Below are positions 80 to 5,870 of a stretch of DNA of 64,000 nt, piece by piece. The stretch lies in assembly GCA_001643675.2 (NCBI GenBank), contig LSRY02000013.1, forward strand, positions 992,001-1,056,000. Reading direction: 5' to 3'. Under the pieces are notes generated by a model that did no database searches, was not told the origin of the DNA, and worked only from the letters and a program-made list of their open reading frames with translations. A program made the translations under genes and the position numbers. This DNA comes from Monocercomonoides exilis PA203. Lineage: Eukaryota > Protista > Preaxostyla. Positions within the stretch are counted from its first letter, which is position 1; each line of letters starts with the position of its first letter.

Positions 80-574
80 ATTGAAACCAATTCGTTTGGC
101 AGGATACATAAACCATTATGCAGCATCAAATAGCATTCACAAAGTCCAACAAGAAGATTTTCGTTTTTCTCACATATTTTTTTTGTTCTCTTCAATTATC
201 ATCCTTTCAAATCTTTCATACACAGAAAATTCTTCAAAGAATACGTTCCATATTCTTTTTAGTACTTTGCAACATCTTAGATACTTTAACAATAATGATG
301 TGTTTTCCATTGTTATTTTCTTTTCTTCAATCATTTCATGAATTTTGTTGAAAATTTTTGTCGTGAAAACAGTTTCGAATTCATTTCCATCCATTCAATC
401 AATTACTTCATTCATTTCTTCGATTTTCTGTTTCTGCTCTTCCTCATTTCAATGTTCATTCTTAGAAAACAATTCTTCATTAAATAAAGATAAAAATTTA
501 AATAGCATCAATCAAGAATTCAAATGCAACAACATTAGCACACCTGTAAACTTTCTTGATAGAACGCAGTGAGA

Positions 575-640
575 CAGGATTTGCTCCGAAATAATGAGTA
601 TTGTTCACGATTTATGGGCGGTTTAAGTGAAAACTTCGCC
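575..640. repeat. DIRS inverted terminal repeat (3' copy); partner at 4996-5060
   Basis: AATAATGAGTATTGTTCACGATTTATGGGCGGTTTAAG (590-627) is the exact reverse complement of 5009-5046. The match extends imperfectly to ...AACTTCGCC and CAGG(A)TTTGCTCC. Confidence 0.93.
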
Positions 641-1212
641 CTCCCAAAATGACGTGGGAAAAAGGGCGAGATGAAAATATAGACAAAAACATTTAGACAA
701 AAATAAGTGTATTTTGAATTGTCCGCTTCACTTCACCACCTTCTTCGCCTTTTTGCCTTGGTCACGAAGACCAGAGGGCAGGGGACATTGCCCCTCGGAG
801 CTTTCTCCTGCAGTCAGTGCAGGGATCCGGTGAGGCGAATATAATCAAGGAGCAGAAAGAAAAACCACTCTCGCTTCCGCGAGGCGTGGAAAAGAAAACT
901 GCATGTTATGCGCTCTGCCTCCTGCTCTTCTGCTGCATCAGCAGAGCAACCCCAATCATCACACACTGCATATTAAATATTCAATTCTTCTCTGTAAAAA
1001 CAATAATAATCTTACAAAGGAGTAGGATCATGCTTGAACTTTTTATTTGTTTCCATGTTTCTCAAAAAAGGTTCTTGGTGTACATTAATATCTTCGGGCG
1101 GTTGATCTTTTCCTCTATCCTTCTATATCTCGCCCTTTTTCTCGTCATATTCCTCCAAATATGTTTCTCTCTGACGCACCCAGCCGCTCTGAGTCTCTCC
1201 ATCCGCGTTAGT

Positions 1213-1309
1213 ATTATTTCGGAGCAAATCCTGTCTCACTGCGTTCTATCAATTCGCAATAGAGCGAATATCCGAACGCAAGAAGCAGGTTTGCTCCTCA
1301 ATAATGAGT
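1213..1309. repeat. Internal complementary region (ICR) of the DIRS element
   Basis: 1213-1252 is the reverse complement of 556-595 (40/40). 1250-1309 is the reverse complement of 5037-5096 (59/60). The two halves overlap at CAA (TTG on the other strand), i.e. the circle-junction sequence. Confidence 0.93.
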
Positions 1310-4300
1310 TTTGAAATCCCTTTTTAAATATTTATTCTTACTTAATTTTATATTTATTTATTTATATATAATGATCTTAAACCCTCCTGCCTAGCACGTC
1401 ATCGTGCGGCGGATGATTAGAGAGCCTGCGGATGAAGGTGCGGCCATTGTCTCTACTCCCTTTATTTCTTGAGGTGTTTCCGAGGTGTTCTCGACCGGGA
1501 ATTCGTTCCTCTTGAGTTCTTTATTATATAACCTTGACTTCTTTCTCCATTCTTCCTCCGGTCTGTGCCCTTCTTTCTCTGTGAGGCAGTGCGTCTGCTT
1601 CCAGTCAGTTCGCTTCCGCTGCTGGGAATTATGAGGGATGTTCTCCGACTCTCGAGTGATCGGAATAAGTTGTGTTGTGATTGAGTTCTTTCTCTCAACT
1701 TTCTCTCTTCTCAGCTCAGGAAGTCTTGTCTCTTTAAATTCTTCCCTTTTCTCATATCTTCATCTCCCCCAGCTTCTGATATATGTATATATATATATAT
1801 ACATATTTGATACAATATTTCATCTCTGAATTTGCATTCTCGATTCACATATCCTTCATTCCTCCACTTATATCCAACTTTTCTTCTTCTCCACGAGGGG
1901 GTTCTTGAAAGTCGATCGTCAACAGGATCCATTTCATATCTTGAACAAGAAAAATGTTTTAAATTTTCTGTCCACTCTTGATCCTTGCTCCCCTCTTGCG
2001 TGTATCTTTCTCGCTTTCCAATCTCAACATTTTCTTCTTGATATGTGTATTATAACTTTATGTCTAATCGAGAGCGCGGTCAAATGATCGTGTATTTCAT
2101 ACTCTCTTAGAATAGCTTCTAACTCTTCTTTTATTCTCTGCATATTTGTAGGCTCACCTTCTTTAATATCAACCGCACGTGTTCATCTTTTTAAAATAAT
2201 CCTGGAAAAATCCAACTCACGTTGGAGCGTTTCTTCTGTATCGATGATTGAGTTTGGATGTTTGTTAATATCGATTTTTATTGTCTTCCTTAATGTTATC
2301 TTTATCTGCACTTCTATTAATGCTGCATTCTCTTTCAATATAGAACACTACCTTCTCAATCTCTCCAGCTCAGCTGGCTCAAACGTTACAAAATTTCTGT
2401 GAGGATAGGGGCTCTCCTCTGTGATGCTTGCGTGTCTATTGAGTTAAATGTGGTGTCTTCCACATTTAGTTAAAATTGTTAATTCCTGCATTGATCAATA
2501 TTGTTTTCCACTTCTCGGCATATCTCTAACGTGAGTTTAGGAGAAGAATCAATATCTTTCTCATTCGTCTCAAATTCTCTGAAAATGTTAATAGACTCGA
2601 ATACTCTTCGTTCAGCTTTATTGATCTCTCCACTTGAAAAATTCGTATTCGATTGGTTCCCAATAAATTCTGCCATAATTCACTTGGCATCTTTTTCAAT
2701 GAGGGGGTCAGTATCACCAGAACTTTGCTTGTTCAAGAATTGTAAATCTTCGCAGAGCTCTCCCTGTATCTCTTTCACTATTTGGGTTACTCAATATTAC
2801 TGCTGATATGTCCTTCGCTCCAACGTATTCTCTCCATGCTTGAAAAGGTTTCCTTCTTATATATTTTCCTCTCCAGTCTAACACTAATTATTTTTCATGG
2901 GGGAAAATTCTAGTCATCATTTCTCACCTCTTTAGAGATCAATCCGATGTTTCTCAATAATGGACTAGTTCAATCTCGTAAATAAACAATTCTATCTTTC
3001 TCTTCCTTTTTAAAGAGGATAGTTTACAAATAATTCCGCTGGGCACCGGATCAATCTGGTGTGCGATTATCTACATATAGTCTTCTCGGTGCGATTGTTT
3101 GAAATATCTCTGCCACTTTTTACGCTTTCGGTGCATAGTCCAGTTTTATCTAAGTCTGGCTGAGTGCGTCTATCGGCATTTTTGCTGAGATATGCGAAGT
3201 CTTCTTTGATATATTTCAGCTGCACTATTCAGCTTTTTTCTGTATCCGCCTCTCGCTGTCTTCCGCGGTCACATGCTCTATCTTCTCCTCGCGATTCTTC
3301 GCGGATTTCACTTCTTCAATCTTCTGGAAAAGTTTCGCTGTTTCTATATCTGCACATATCTCGTAATTATGCACTGTTTTTTATAGTATTATCAAATCGC
3401 CATTTCTCTCAATTTCTTTCTCTCCTTTTCTCACAGCAAACTCGGTTCTCTCTTCATATTAACTTTTTCGATCATCAGTTTTTTGTTGCTCCACTATTAT
3501 CTCGCGACAATCCACAAATTTCTTTTTTCTCTCAGTCCAGTAATATTTAGCGGTTTCCCTTATGTGATAATTTCTCTTATAATGAAACGTATCATTTCGA
3601 ATTATAAATTAATGATATTTCACTTATTCAGTTTTAATATTGTTTCGTAATACAGCTTGTCAATATTTCCTTTGCAAAGCCAAAAGATTTTCAGAGATTT
3701 CTATCTCAATTATCATCTAGCTGCGAAGCGCGGTTCTCTGCTATCTCTCCTCTCATAGTCTTGGTATTGAACGCGGTCTCTCTCTCCTCTCTTAATCTCG
3801 TGGTAAAGCACGACTTTCTATTCTCTCTCTTTTCTCATTATCTCAAGATCCAACTCGGTTTGATTCTTTGTAACTCTCTCCCGAATATGCACAGCTTCAT
3901 TCCAAATAATTATCTTGTAACTGTAATGAAATTATCCTTTTATTAAAACATTGCTGTAATATATGTATCGATTATTACAAATATCCTTGCATTATATAAA
4001 TATAAATATTTCGTCACTGTATTTATCGGTATCTCGCGTAACTGCGCAGCTCTTTTCACAATAAATCTTCTTTTCATATCAAGCAGATTCTCTATTTATC
4101 CATCTCTCGCTTCAATTCTCTGCACCTCTTTTATTTAATCAAATCATGATCTCGCAGTAAAGTGCGGCTCTCTCTTCTCTCTCTGTCTCGCGGCAAAGCG
4201 CGGCTCTCTCTTTTCTCTCTTCAATTTTAGTCTTACGATTAAACACGGTTATGTTCATTGTAGTTATTTCGATACAATGCTTTGTCTCATTTTAATTATA

Positions 4301-4995
4301 TATATTCAAATTGTAATCAAATTATTATTGCTATATAATCACTTCTGAATTAATTTACATCTCGCGGCTATGCGCGGATCTTCTTCCTTACAAATTCTAT
4401 CAATATTCTGTTGTTTCTCGTTGGTTTTGTTTAAATTTGAATTCCACAGCATTATATGAATATATCTCTTCTATATTGTATATATTTTTTATATTGTTTC
4501 GAAATTTCATTAGATAGGTAATTCTTTCTCCAAAATAATCTCTCTGCAATTTGTGGATCTATCTCTTAAAATTCTTGCGATATCAAGCACTTTCTTAATA
4601 TATCGATATCTTGCTTCAATACATTGTTCTAATTCCTTCATTTTGTTTAAACATCTCTCGATTTTTTATAGTTTCTGTTTGGACAATTGTCTCGCTGCAC
4701 AATGTGGCTCTAATTCCAATAATTAACTCACAGATTTTTATAGCTTCTGTTCTTGATAAAATCTCTTCACAATGTGCAGCTTGCCGTTCGACATCTTCGG
4801 CTGTGCACTCTCTTCCATTCCGGATGATAAATTTCATGCTTAAATCCTGGTAAATTTTTCACAAAAATATTCCACTTTGACCAGTGTTAAATTTTGATCT
4901 AATTCACTTCCATCGCAGTCTCTGTGTTCTATTGTAACAGGTTGTTGCTTCATTTTCATTGCGGACAATTTGGATCAACTTTGAATTTGAGTATT

Positions 4996-5096
4996 GGCGA
5001 AGTTAGATCTTAAACCGCCCATAAATCGTGAACAATACTCATTATTGAGGAGCAAACCTGCTCCTTGCGTTCGGATATTCGCTCTATTGCGAATTG
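4996..5096. repeat. DIRS inverted terminal repeat (5' copy) plus terminal extension
   Basis: Inverted match to 575-640 and to the ICR segment 1250-1309. Confidence 0.93.
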
Positions 5097-5419
5097 TATT
5101 ATCCGACTCTCGCATTGAAAATACATTGCAGCGAGAAATTCATGTTGTTTTTATCATTAGAATTGAATGTTCATATCATTGATTGATGAAATTGAAGCAA
5201 GTTTAAACTTGAATCAACCATGAAAATATCTGCGTTCGTACTGAATTTTCTTGTGTAAGCATTTATTACAAAATATTCGGAAGAGAAACAACTCTTTATC
5301 CATTGATCCTTATTTGGTAATGGTTATGATGATCGAATAATTATATTTGAATAAGATTATCCATTGGAAAGACGAGAGATTGGAAAATGATAATTTTCTG
5401 CAGAATTGACAGTATTATT

Positions 5420-5870
5420 TTGTGAGGTGGTACGAGACAGCAACAACGGGAAATTGATTTTGGAATTGGGGGAGATGATTTTTATGAAAAGCATCTTCGA
5501 AGGAAATTTCTTTTTTAAAAATAACATATGAAAATTATAATGTGTGCATTTTTTATTGTTCTTGTTCATTTTAAAGATGTTTCCATCTGTGGTCTTCTCA
5601 GAGAACAAGAATCTGATAAATTACATTAAATGGACATTTCTTTGTTTTTCTGAGGAGAACATCAGAAGAGAGCCGGATACTGGGATACAATCAGCAGATG
5701 GGAATTGCATATTTTCCTTATTTCATTGGAAGAAGAGATGAAAAACAAATTCGACTGAAAAGCATTTGGATGAAGTGGAAAGAAGAATGCCAACAATTGT
5801 GCAGCATTTGGAGAAAATATTTTCTTACTGTGGAAAAAAGTGAATGAAAATATTTAAAGCAGGATATTTT
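5420..5870 (+). repeat. Conserved upstream block co-duplicated with the host-family gene; paralogous to ~62560-63007
   Basis: Shared strings include TTATTGTTCTTGTTCATTTT, TGTTTCCATCTGTGG, CATCAGAAGAGAG and CAGATGGGAATTGCATATTTTCCTTATT, at similar distance upstream of the ATGs at 5115 and 62252. Confidence 0.85.

Follow-up and report, generated by a model that had tools for sequence, protein, structure and literature searches.

A Non-Autonomous DIRS1-Like Element of Monocercomonoides exilis, Very Probably Copied With Enzymes Supplied in Trans

Introduction

A stretch of 64,000 nucleotides from the metamonad Monocercomonoides exilis PA203 (GenBank assembly GCA_001643675.2, contig LSRY02000013.1, here C7:992001-1056000; hereafter the window) contains a 4541-bp element, at window positions 556-5096, which is a derivative of a DIRS1-like retrotransposon family. 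It is very probably a non-autonomous member of a family resident in this genome, copied with enzymes supplied in trans, as an earlier note made from the letters of this DNA alone had proposed. That proposal has gained support from lesions shared by copies at unrelated sites and from coexisting full-length relatives with matching ends. The element has all the cis-acting parts and no proteins, yet it has multiplied, and the reverse transcriptase (RT)/RNase H, the tyrosine recombinase and probably Gag would therefore have come from other elements.

DIRS1-like elements carry two internal complementary regions (ICRs) near the 3′ end, which are complementary to the termini and overlap on a 3-bp circular junction (PMC3266345). 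In the model for DIRS-1 the transcript lacks the outermost ends; the ends of the cDNA anneal to the ICR and are completed there, the junction of the resulting circle is the complement of the ICR, and the recombinase integrates the circle (PMC7192593). Experiments in Dictyostelium have shown that the ICR is essential and that RT acts in trans on a truncated DIRS-1; a full cycle in trans was not shown (PMC7192593). All whole-genome searches described here covered 82,301,135 bases in 101 contigs.

Structure of the Element

The features of the element are as follows, in window coordinates (ITR, inverted terminal repeat; ORF, open reading frame).

556-5096, minus (sense strand): entire non-autonomous DIRS1-like element of 4541 bp; homology with sister copies begins and ends exactly here
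5037-5096, minus: 5′ terminus, left extension and start of the left ITR; 59/60 complementary to 1250-1309
4996-5056: left ITR arm, pairing with 580-640; exact 38-nt core at 5009-5046
4117-4995, minus: type B 5′ untranslated-like region lacking gag/ORF1 homology; carries a 62-bp deletion private to this copy at ~4636/4637
3172-4116, minus: N-terminal part of the pol ORF preceding RT, with many stops; collinear with the sequence before RT in L039, an older RT-bearing copy
3171/3172, minus: deletion junction; pol residues ~400-870 missing, with all of RVT_1 and RNase H
2916-3171, minus: remnant of the pol tail after RNase H, corresponding to about residues 857-958 of pol in a full-length relative
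1456-2679, minus: tyrosine-recombinase pseudogene; ~39% amino acid identity to intact recombinases of the family, tblastn E 5e-39
1213-1313, minus: ICR; the arm 1250-1313 pairs with the 5′ end, the arm 1213-1252 with the 3′ end
641-1212, minus: conserved 3′ module, reaching from the ICR to the right ITR; GC-rich core of ~230 nt (about 730-960)
580-640: right ITR arm, pairing with 4996-5056; exact core at 590-627
556-595, minus: 3′ terminus, end of the right ITR and right extension; 40/40 complementary to 1213-1252

In the sense orientation the element starts CAA-TTCGCAAT and finishes TCTAT-CAA, and the flanking trinucleotide at both ends is CAA (TTG on the plus strand). A repeat search and a direct count both gave 38 nt as the longest exact inverted match, 590-627 against 5009-5046, within a 61-nt ITR of 90% complementarity, which reproduces the 38/38 core of the earlier note. 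Its counts for the ICR, 40/40 and 59/60, were likewise recovered; over the longer stretch 1250-1313 the match to the 5′ end is 62/64. The two ICR arms overlap by 3 bp at 1250-1252, CAA on the plus strand, which is the circular junction, and when the 3′ and 5′ ends are joined via a single CAA, the ICR as a whole is the reverse complement of the product. The element retains the cis needs of a DIRS element: termini with short ITRs, the ICR, and a module of ~570 nt beside the ICR.

Coding capacity for its own replication is absent by ORF content, tblastn and Pfam. The longest minus-strand ORF within the element has 78 amino acids, in agreement with the ceiling of ~80 given previously. Ten stop-free pieces gave no relevant Pfam match, the recombinase included, and the coding remnants were detected only by tblastn with the family's own proteins. 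The recombinase pseudogene lies in three frames with at least nine in-frame stops and at least three frameshifts; the stops fall opposite K48, K62, D79, D111, E166, A219, Y241 and S279, and another lies within an insertion. The remnant of the pol tail was found with a tblastn E of 3e-9 and is 76-77% identical to full-length relatives by blastn; in relatives this tail (residues ~857-1016) occupies the position expected for the methyltransferase-like domain that follows RNase H in DIRS1-like elements. In tblastn searches of the window element, ORF1 of the full-length relatives found no match, nor did RT (pol 476-638) or RNase H (pol 749-843), and family RT/RNase H protein found nothing between window 4022 and 3215. 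The element has no RT core and no YxDD motif, the latter as the earlier note had observed, and in 3350-4600, which that note had singled out as the place where an RT core might be recovered, none was found by tblastn, by collinearity with L039 or by Pfam.

Two of the smaller identifications made earlier have to be replaced. The peptide KFVDCRE (~window 3520), read as an N-terminal RT motif, is a degenerate unit of a 36-bp repeat of the family: its DNA scores 18 against that repeat (shuffles 7.9 +/- 1.5, none of 500 reaching the score), and against the RT domain-1 DNA of a full-length relative it gives no alignment, with 384/500 shuffles reaching the score. The site is in the pre-RT part of pol, ~350 nt upstream of the deletion junction. 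The supposed RNase H remnants align to residues 857-958 of pol, which lie downstream of the RNase H domain given by Pfam (749-843). The 36-bp repeat survives in the window as two clear units (4144-4220) and as degenerate units as far as ~3494. In full-length relatives the repeat forms a tandem array at the start of the pol ORF that encodes (AALCRETEREEK)n and is open in all three frames; its length varies from <1 kb in L033 (2760-3500) to ~1.6 kb in L035 (6069-7661).

Copies at Unrelated Sites Share the Same Lesions

A search of the whole genome with the window element gave 216 matches. Three are close copies, full-length or almost so, at C35:114787-119457, C21:756623-761273 and C59:317526-321887, the last with a truncated 3′ end. 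With the window copy included, the four have pairwise identities of 94.3-97.9% (divergence 2.1-5.7%), and identity is uniform along their length apart from the 5′ 500 nt. Homology halts at the ends of the element, and the flanks are unrelated. At least three near-identical sister copies at different sites exclude single-copy status, one of the outcomes that the earlier note had named as contrary to its proposal.

The lesions are shared. Seventeen stops lie in the recombinase-homologous frames of the window copy, and 16 of them are common to all four copies, the remaining one to three of the four. Eight are not counted as recombinase lesions because they lie upstream of the recombinase start codon; the nine within the coding sequence are equally shared. 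All four copies also lack RT/RNase H, with an identical junction, so that sister copies with the same stops and the same RT deletion, as predicted, do exist.

The decay of the recombinase goes back further still. Fifteen of the window stops were checked in relatives that are 77-83% identical there (the RT-less C29, C8b, C25a and C40, and the RT-bearing C33 and C8), and each relative has 5-9 of them. The stops opposite K48, D79 and E166 and at window 1713 are common to 6-8 of the 9 sequences compared. Since stops are shared with relatives only ~80% identical, this type of recombinase was dead long before the window sub-family, and was still copied. The recombinase gene of the window sub-lineage was already a pseudogene before the last rounds of copying, and there is no gag-like ORF. 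In two of the 14 RT-less copies examined (C48 and C34) the recombinase frame is uninterrupted, with 94-95% identity to the frame of young full-length elements.

The window copy has losses of its own, 62 bp at ~4636/4637 and two 36-bp units at ~4221, where the bases are present in every other relative. Another pair of RT-less copies, C69:558471-562809 and C69:534397-538738, lie ~20 kb apart in opposite orientation. The two agree in ORF pattern and in their identities to the window, and so look like the products of an inverted segmental duplication and not of separate insertions.

A Single Deletion Founded the RT-less Lineage

The earlier note had described a coding region that decayed long before this copy inserted. 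For the recombinase this stands; RT did not decay and was removed by a clean deletion. On one side of the junction, window 4116-3180 is collinear with the sequence just upstream of the RT domain in L039 (68.5% over 955 nt), in which RT homology starts ~140 nt after the similarity to the window stops. On the other side, homology with every RT-bearing copy starts exactly at window 3171. A 209-nt probe centred on 3171|3172 matched end to end at 30 genomic places, with 75-100% identity, and a separate probe from the pre-RT segment gave the same count. Ten other listed places match the junction probe from the junction base onward only, each just downstream of an RT match. A junction common to ~30 copies, with one-sided matches in RT-bearing copies, means that one deletion founded the lineage. 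Pol residues ~400-870 were lost by a single internal deletion in an ancestor, and the derivative multiplied to ~30 copies. Divergence within the RT-less lineage now reaches up to a quarter of the bases. The segment 3172-3696, which no full-length relative matched initially, was considered as lineage-specific or captured sequence; this was rejected, as it is pre-RT pol in older RT-bearing copies.

Coding Relatives

Many of the matches covered only the 3′ 1.08 kb of the element, and their extension gave full-length elements of 6.3-7.6 kb. These have an ORF1 of 333-412 amino acids with no Pfam match, a pol with RVT_1 (E down to 9e-28) and RT_RNaseH (E 1e-9), and a recombinase ORF in which Phage_integrase is above the gathering score. 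The earlier note had named an intact DIRS element with the same termini as support for its proposal, and the termini and ICR of the full-length relatives are indeed 96-100% identical to those of the window element. A search with the RT/RNase H segment gave at least 108 places; the 383-amino-acid probe is stop-free in 19 among the matches listed. Four full-length elements differ pairwise by 2.1-5.1% over 4.3 kb, a range similar to that of the window's sisters. To judge by these divergences, the putative helpers and the window sub-family are contemporaneous and equally young.

The RT-bearing copies have two kinds of 5′ region, one with the 333-412-amino-acid ORF1 and one without any ORF1 (L033:1806-8067 vs L034:1869-8159). 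The ORF1-less kind, the C36 type, also occurs in the RT-less lineage. Even among copies whose pol and recombinase frames are open, some may need the gag of another element.

One RT-bearing copy, C33:909346-915253 (L037 and L008), was tried as the closest autonomous kin or helper and set aside: it has stops in RT and 9/15 of the window stops in its recombinase region. Its ICR is 99% identical to the window's, and its 5′ end has 6 mismatches with its own ICR. It is probably a hybrid of two sub-families. Beside one DIRS copy, L033:8522-9475 (minus strand) holds an open frame of 318 amino acids with a match to Pfam PF14811 (TPD motif protein, E 1.6e-14), presumably a host gene. The genome also has a second retroelement family, whose RT/RNase H is 38-41% identical to that of the window family. 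Its five matches, all stop-free in the probe, are at these loci:

C31:753655-754788
C17:729206-730339
C36:1244406-1245539
C8:320875-322005
C14:1657548-1658678

Conserved Signals and the Covariation of ICR and Ends

Only the cis signals are conserved between the window element and young full-length relatives. The identities along the element are:

5′ terminal 59 nt, window vs young full-length: 98%
5′ region, window vs young full-length: 70-82%
Recombinase region, window vs young full-length: 42-72%
ICR, window vs young full-length: 96-98% (vs full-length relatives: 96-99%)
600 nt after the ICR, window vs young full-length: 80-97%
Last bin, window vs young full-length: 100%
Last 720 nt as a whole, window vs young full-length: 80-100%

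The ICR changes together with the ends that it is expected to template. At one position both the 5′ end and the ICR have C in RT-less copies and A in young full-length copies; a one-base indel of the 3′ end is mirrored in the ICR; and a G>A private to one full-length copy is present at the 5′ end of that copy and again in its ICR. When the ICRs of 12 elements were compared with their own termini there were 26 mismatches, against 43.9 +/- 4.1 for permuted ICRs (0/20,000 as low), a statistic that is inflated to an unquantified degree by the shared descent of the 12 elements. The three full close copies retain 1, 4 and 3 mismatches per 89 nt between ICR and ends, which is in the range of a perfect match at insertion followed by neutral decay at the element-wide rate, as roughly estimated from the divergences.

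The module at 641-1212 is the best-conserved long stretch of the family, and its core of ~230 nt is nearly invariant across sub-families. From this conservation it is probably a cis-acting signal. A small sense ORF occurs in the module of some relatives and is truncated in the window, and single-base indels between relatives in the alignment argue against a conserved protein. Folding of the module predicts stem-loops with 123 pairs, only 1 of which has a compensatory change; the region varies too little for this to speak for or against the structure.

Copying in Trans and Its Alternatives

Following the DIRS-1 model (Cappello et al.; tested in PMC7192593), the steps of mobilisation can be proposed. 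A sub-genomic transcript of the window element would be packaged and reverse-transcribed by the RT/RNase H, and presumably the Gag, of co-resident full-length elements. Its missing ends would be rebuilt on its own ICR. The resulting circle would then be integrated by recombinase supplied in trans at a short NAA-like target, with no target-site duplication.

The alternative that survives best, improbable as it is, is spread at the level of DNA, either by Crypton-like excision and reintegration through a recombinase acting in trans or by ectopic recombination or segmental duplication. The uninterrupted recombinase frames of the RT-less C48 and C34 would suit it, as would the mosaic identities described below, which show that recombination in the family is frequent. 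Against it, the flanks are unrelated right at the ends of the element, and the copies are therefore not segmental duplications; cut-and-paste alone would not lift the copy number to ~30; and such spread would leave the ICR without a role, despite its being the best-conserved part and its covariation with the termini.

That an autonomous DIRS element inserted in the window, and then lost its RT and gained stops in place, is very hard to sustain. The private indels and the lack of any ORF above 78 amino acids are what such a relic would have, but its deletion junction and 16/17 of its stops recur identically at three other loci, and the near-identity of its ICR and ends (a single mismatch over 89 nt) is of much later date than the decay of its coding regions. 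Equally remote is gene conversion among dispersed copies that decayed independently, so as to mimic shared lesions: mosaicism between sub-families does show exchange of sequence, but a 4.5-kb tract with an exact junction would have had to be copied to ~30 loci, ending precisely at the ends of the element each time, and the close copies are uniformly identical outside the 5′ 500 nt.

Several points weigh against the reading of copying in trans. Base-by-base examination covered about half of the ~30 RT-less copies, and the inflation by shared descent noted above applies to the covariation of ICR and ends. The window copy itself may be incompetent, with its private 62-bp deletion, two lost repeat units and one private ICR mismatch. 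The identity of the full-length sub-family that helped is deduced solely from the match of cis signals and the similar age, and mobilisation itself from the genome sequence. Four public runs were compared as assembled contigs; those from DNA cover the element in short stretches, and neither junction-spanning nor empty-site joints turned up in the four runs. Two RNA-library runs ('synthetic metagenome') have contigs at ~2507-2864, 4636-4835 and 1175-1233, with a depth of 3-6; these are sparse, could be DNA carry-over, and are not counted as evidence of transcription. One of the RNA-library contigs comes from a sister copy, because it continues across the private 62-bp deletion of the window copy.

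Insertion Sites

Ten elements were compared at their ends. The 3′ end is CAA in 10/10, and the triplet before the 5′ end is CAA in three, TAA in three, and GAA, AAA, CTA and AAG in one each. No target-site duplication beyond the junction triplet was found in the ten. A constant 3′ CAA and a mostly NAA triplet before the 5′ end fit integration by a recombinase at a loosely specified core. A paralogue at C7:480844-481902 has both flanks of the window copy as one contiguous stretch (92% and 85% identity); ~20 nt at the site have diverged, and the empty site was recovered approximately only.

A gene of a very large host family has the window copy within its 5′ end or just upstream (window 100-555 and 5097-5700); a first look at this family gave 976 candidates, with no Pfam match in the parts tested. 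Six other DIRS insertions (L002, L008, L021, L034, L035 and L036) have a member of this family ~0-1.3 kb away. A target preference for the host gene family is possible.

Mosaicism and a Community of Lineages

Per-segment BLAST has shown that different parts of the RT-less elements have different nearest relatives. C48 and C34 combine 3′ halves that are 91-94% identical to young full-length elements with 5′ halves of RT-less type; in C18a, identity to the window is ~90% for the pre-RT segment and only 66-71% for the recombinase region. Recombination between the RT-less and the coding lineages is the simplest account of these mosaics, and template switching between co-packaged RNAs could have yielded them.

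The elements of the family can be arranged by what they retain:

Full-length: C1, C13, C30 type
Pol and recombinase frames open, gag missing: C36 type
RT missing, recombinase frame open: C48, C34
RT missing, recombinase dead: window lineage
RT present, recombinase dead as in the window lineage: C33, C8

They may form a long-lived community of partly defective DIRS lineages that complement each other, in which the RT-less lineage persists by recombining again and again with any coding sub-family that is active at the time and so refreshes its termini, ICR and 3′ module. This is offered tentatively, as having slightly less than an even chance of being right. If it were true, such a community would be natural evidence that every DIRS protein, the recombinase included, acts in trans, which the Dictyostelium assay could not demonstrate (PMC7192593).

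Relation to Known Elements

The window element resembles DIRS-1 of Dictyostelium discoideum and other DIRS1-like elements in its ITRs with terminal extensions, its two ICR arms near the 3′ end and their 3-bp junction overlap (Cappello et al.; Poulter and Goodwin; PMC3266345; PMC7192593), and its full-length relatives, like DIRS-1, encode RT/RNase H and a tyrosine recombinase. It differs from DIRS-1 in lacking RT/RNase H and gag, in having a recombinase pseudogene, and in its short ITRs (61 nt). The window element is a derivative of a DIRS1-like family and not a coding member, since RT/RNase H is absent from it and present in the full-length relatives that share its ends. The family as a whole is set apart from DIRS-1 by its full-length order of ORF1, pol and recombinase, by the variable 36-bp repeat inside pol, and by its metamonad host.

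Large retrotransposon derivatives (LARD) and terminal-repeat retrotransposons in miniature (TRIM) have lost their coding capacity, have kept their terminal cis signals and are amplified by the proteins of autonomous partners. The comparison with them drawn in the earlier note is apt, with the differences that the window element belongs to another order of elements, that its ends come from the ICR and not from strand transfers between long terminal repeats, and that a tyrosine recombinase takes the place of a DDE integrase. Non-autonomous elements of the DIRS order have been described before, namely TOC1 (PMC9940879) and SIRE (PMC6681497).

TOC1 of Chlamydomonas reinhardtii is a non-autonomous DIRS retrotransposon (PMC9940879). 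Like it, the window element is an enzyme-less DIRS-order element of several kb that multiplies beside coding relatives. Goodwin and Poulter are said to have recognised TOC3 as a coding relative of TOC1 in 2004. TOC1 belongs to the branch of the DIRS order that has split direct repeats and not ITRs with an ICR. Unlike the case of TOC1, the founding deletion is here defined to the base, and the lineage has diversified to ~75% identity. SIRE of Trypanosoma cruzi is a truncated derivative of VIPER, ~0.4 kb long, whose mobility is debated (PMC6681497). Both SIRE and the window element derive from a tyrosine-recombinase retroelement and keep both parental ends; the window element, unlike SIRE, is 4.5 kb long, with long non-coding remnants of pol and recombinase.

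A search of one literature library found no paper linking M. exilis with DIRS. The M. exilis genome paper reports 46% repeats, mostly unclassified (35% of the assembly), and DIRS is unmentioned in it (PMC8767320). Whether excavates have DIRS1-like elements was termed uncertain in 2011 (PMC3266345).

Significance

Non-autonomous elements of the DIRS order were known already, and no new principle is involved. What is added here is the exact founding junction with its copy number, how deep the shared recombinase decay reaches, the joint change of ICR and termini, the profile of conservation, and the equal age of helper and passenger. A well-structured DIRS1-like family is now documented in a metamonad, and for genome annotation it matters that elements such as this one would otherwise be overlooked or masked as unclassified repeats. 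The conserved regions outline the minimal cis needs: ~60 nt at the 5′ end, the ICR, and ~600 nt after the ICR. The window element is a clean natural case of a DIRS1-like ITR/ICR element multiplying after the loss of all its enzymes. In the laboratory, supply in trans has been shown for reverse transcription only; from the genomic record of this family, all DIRS functions, the recombinase included, appear to be suppliable in trans.

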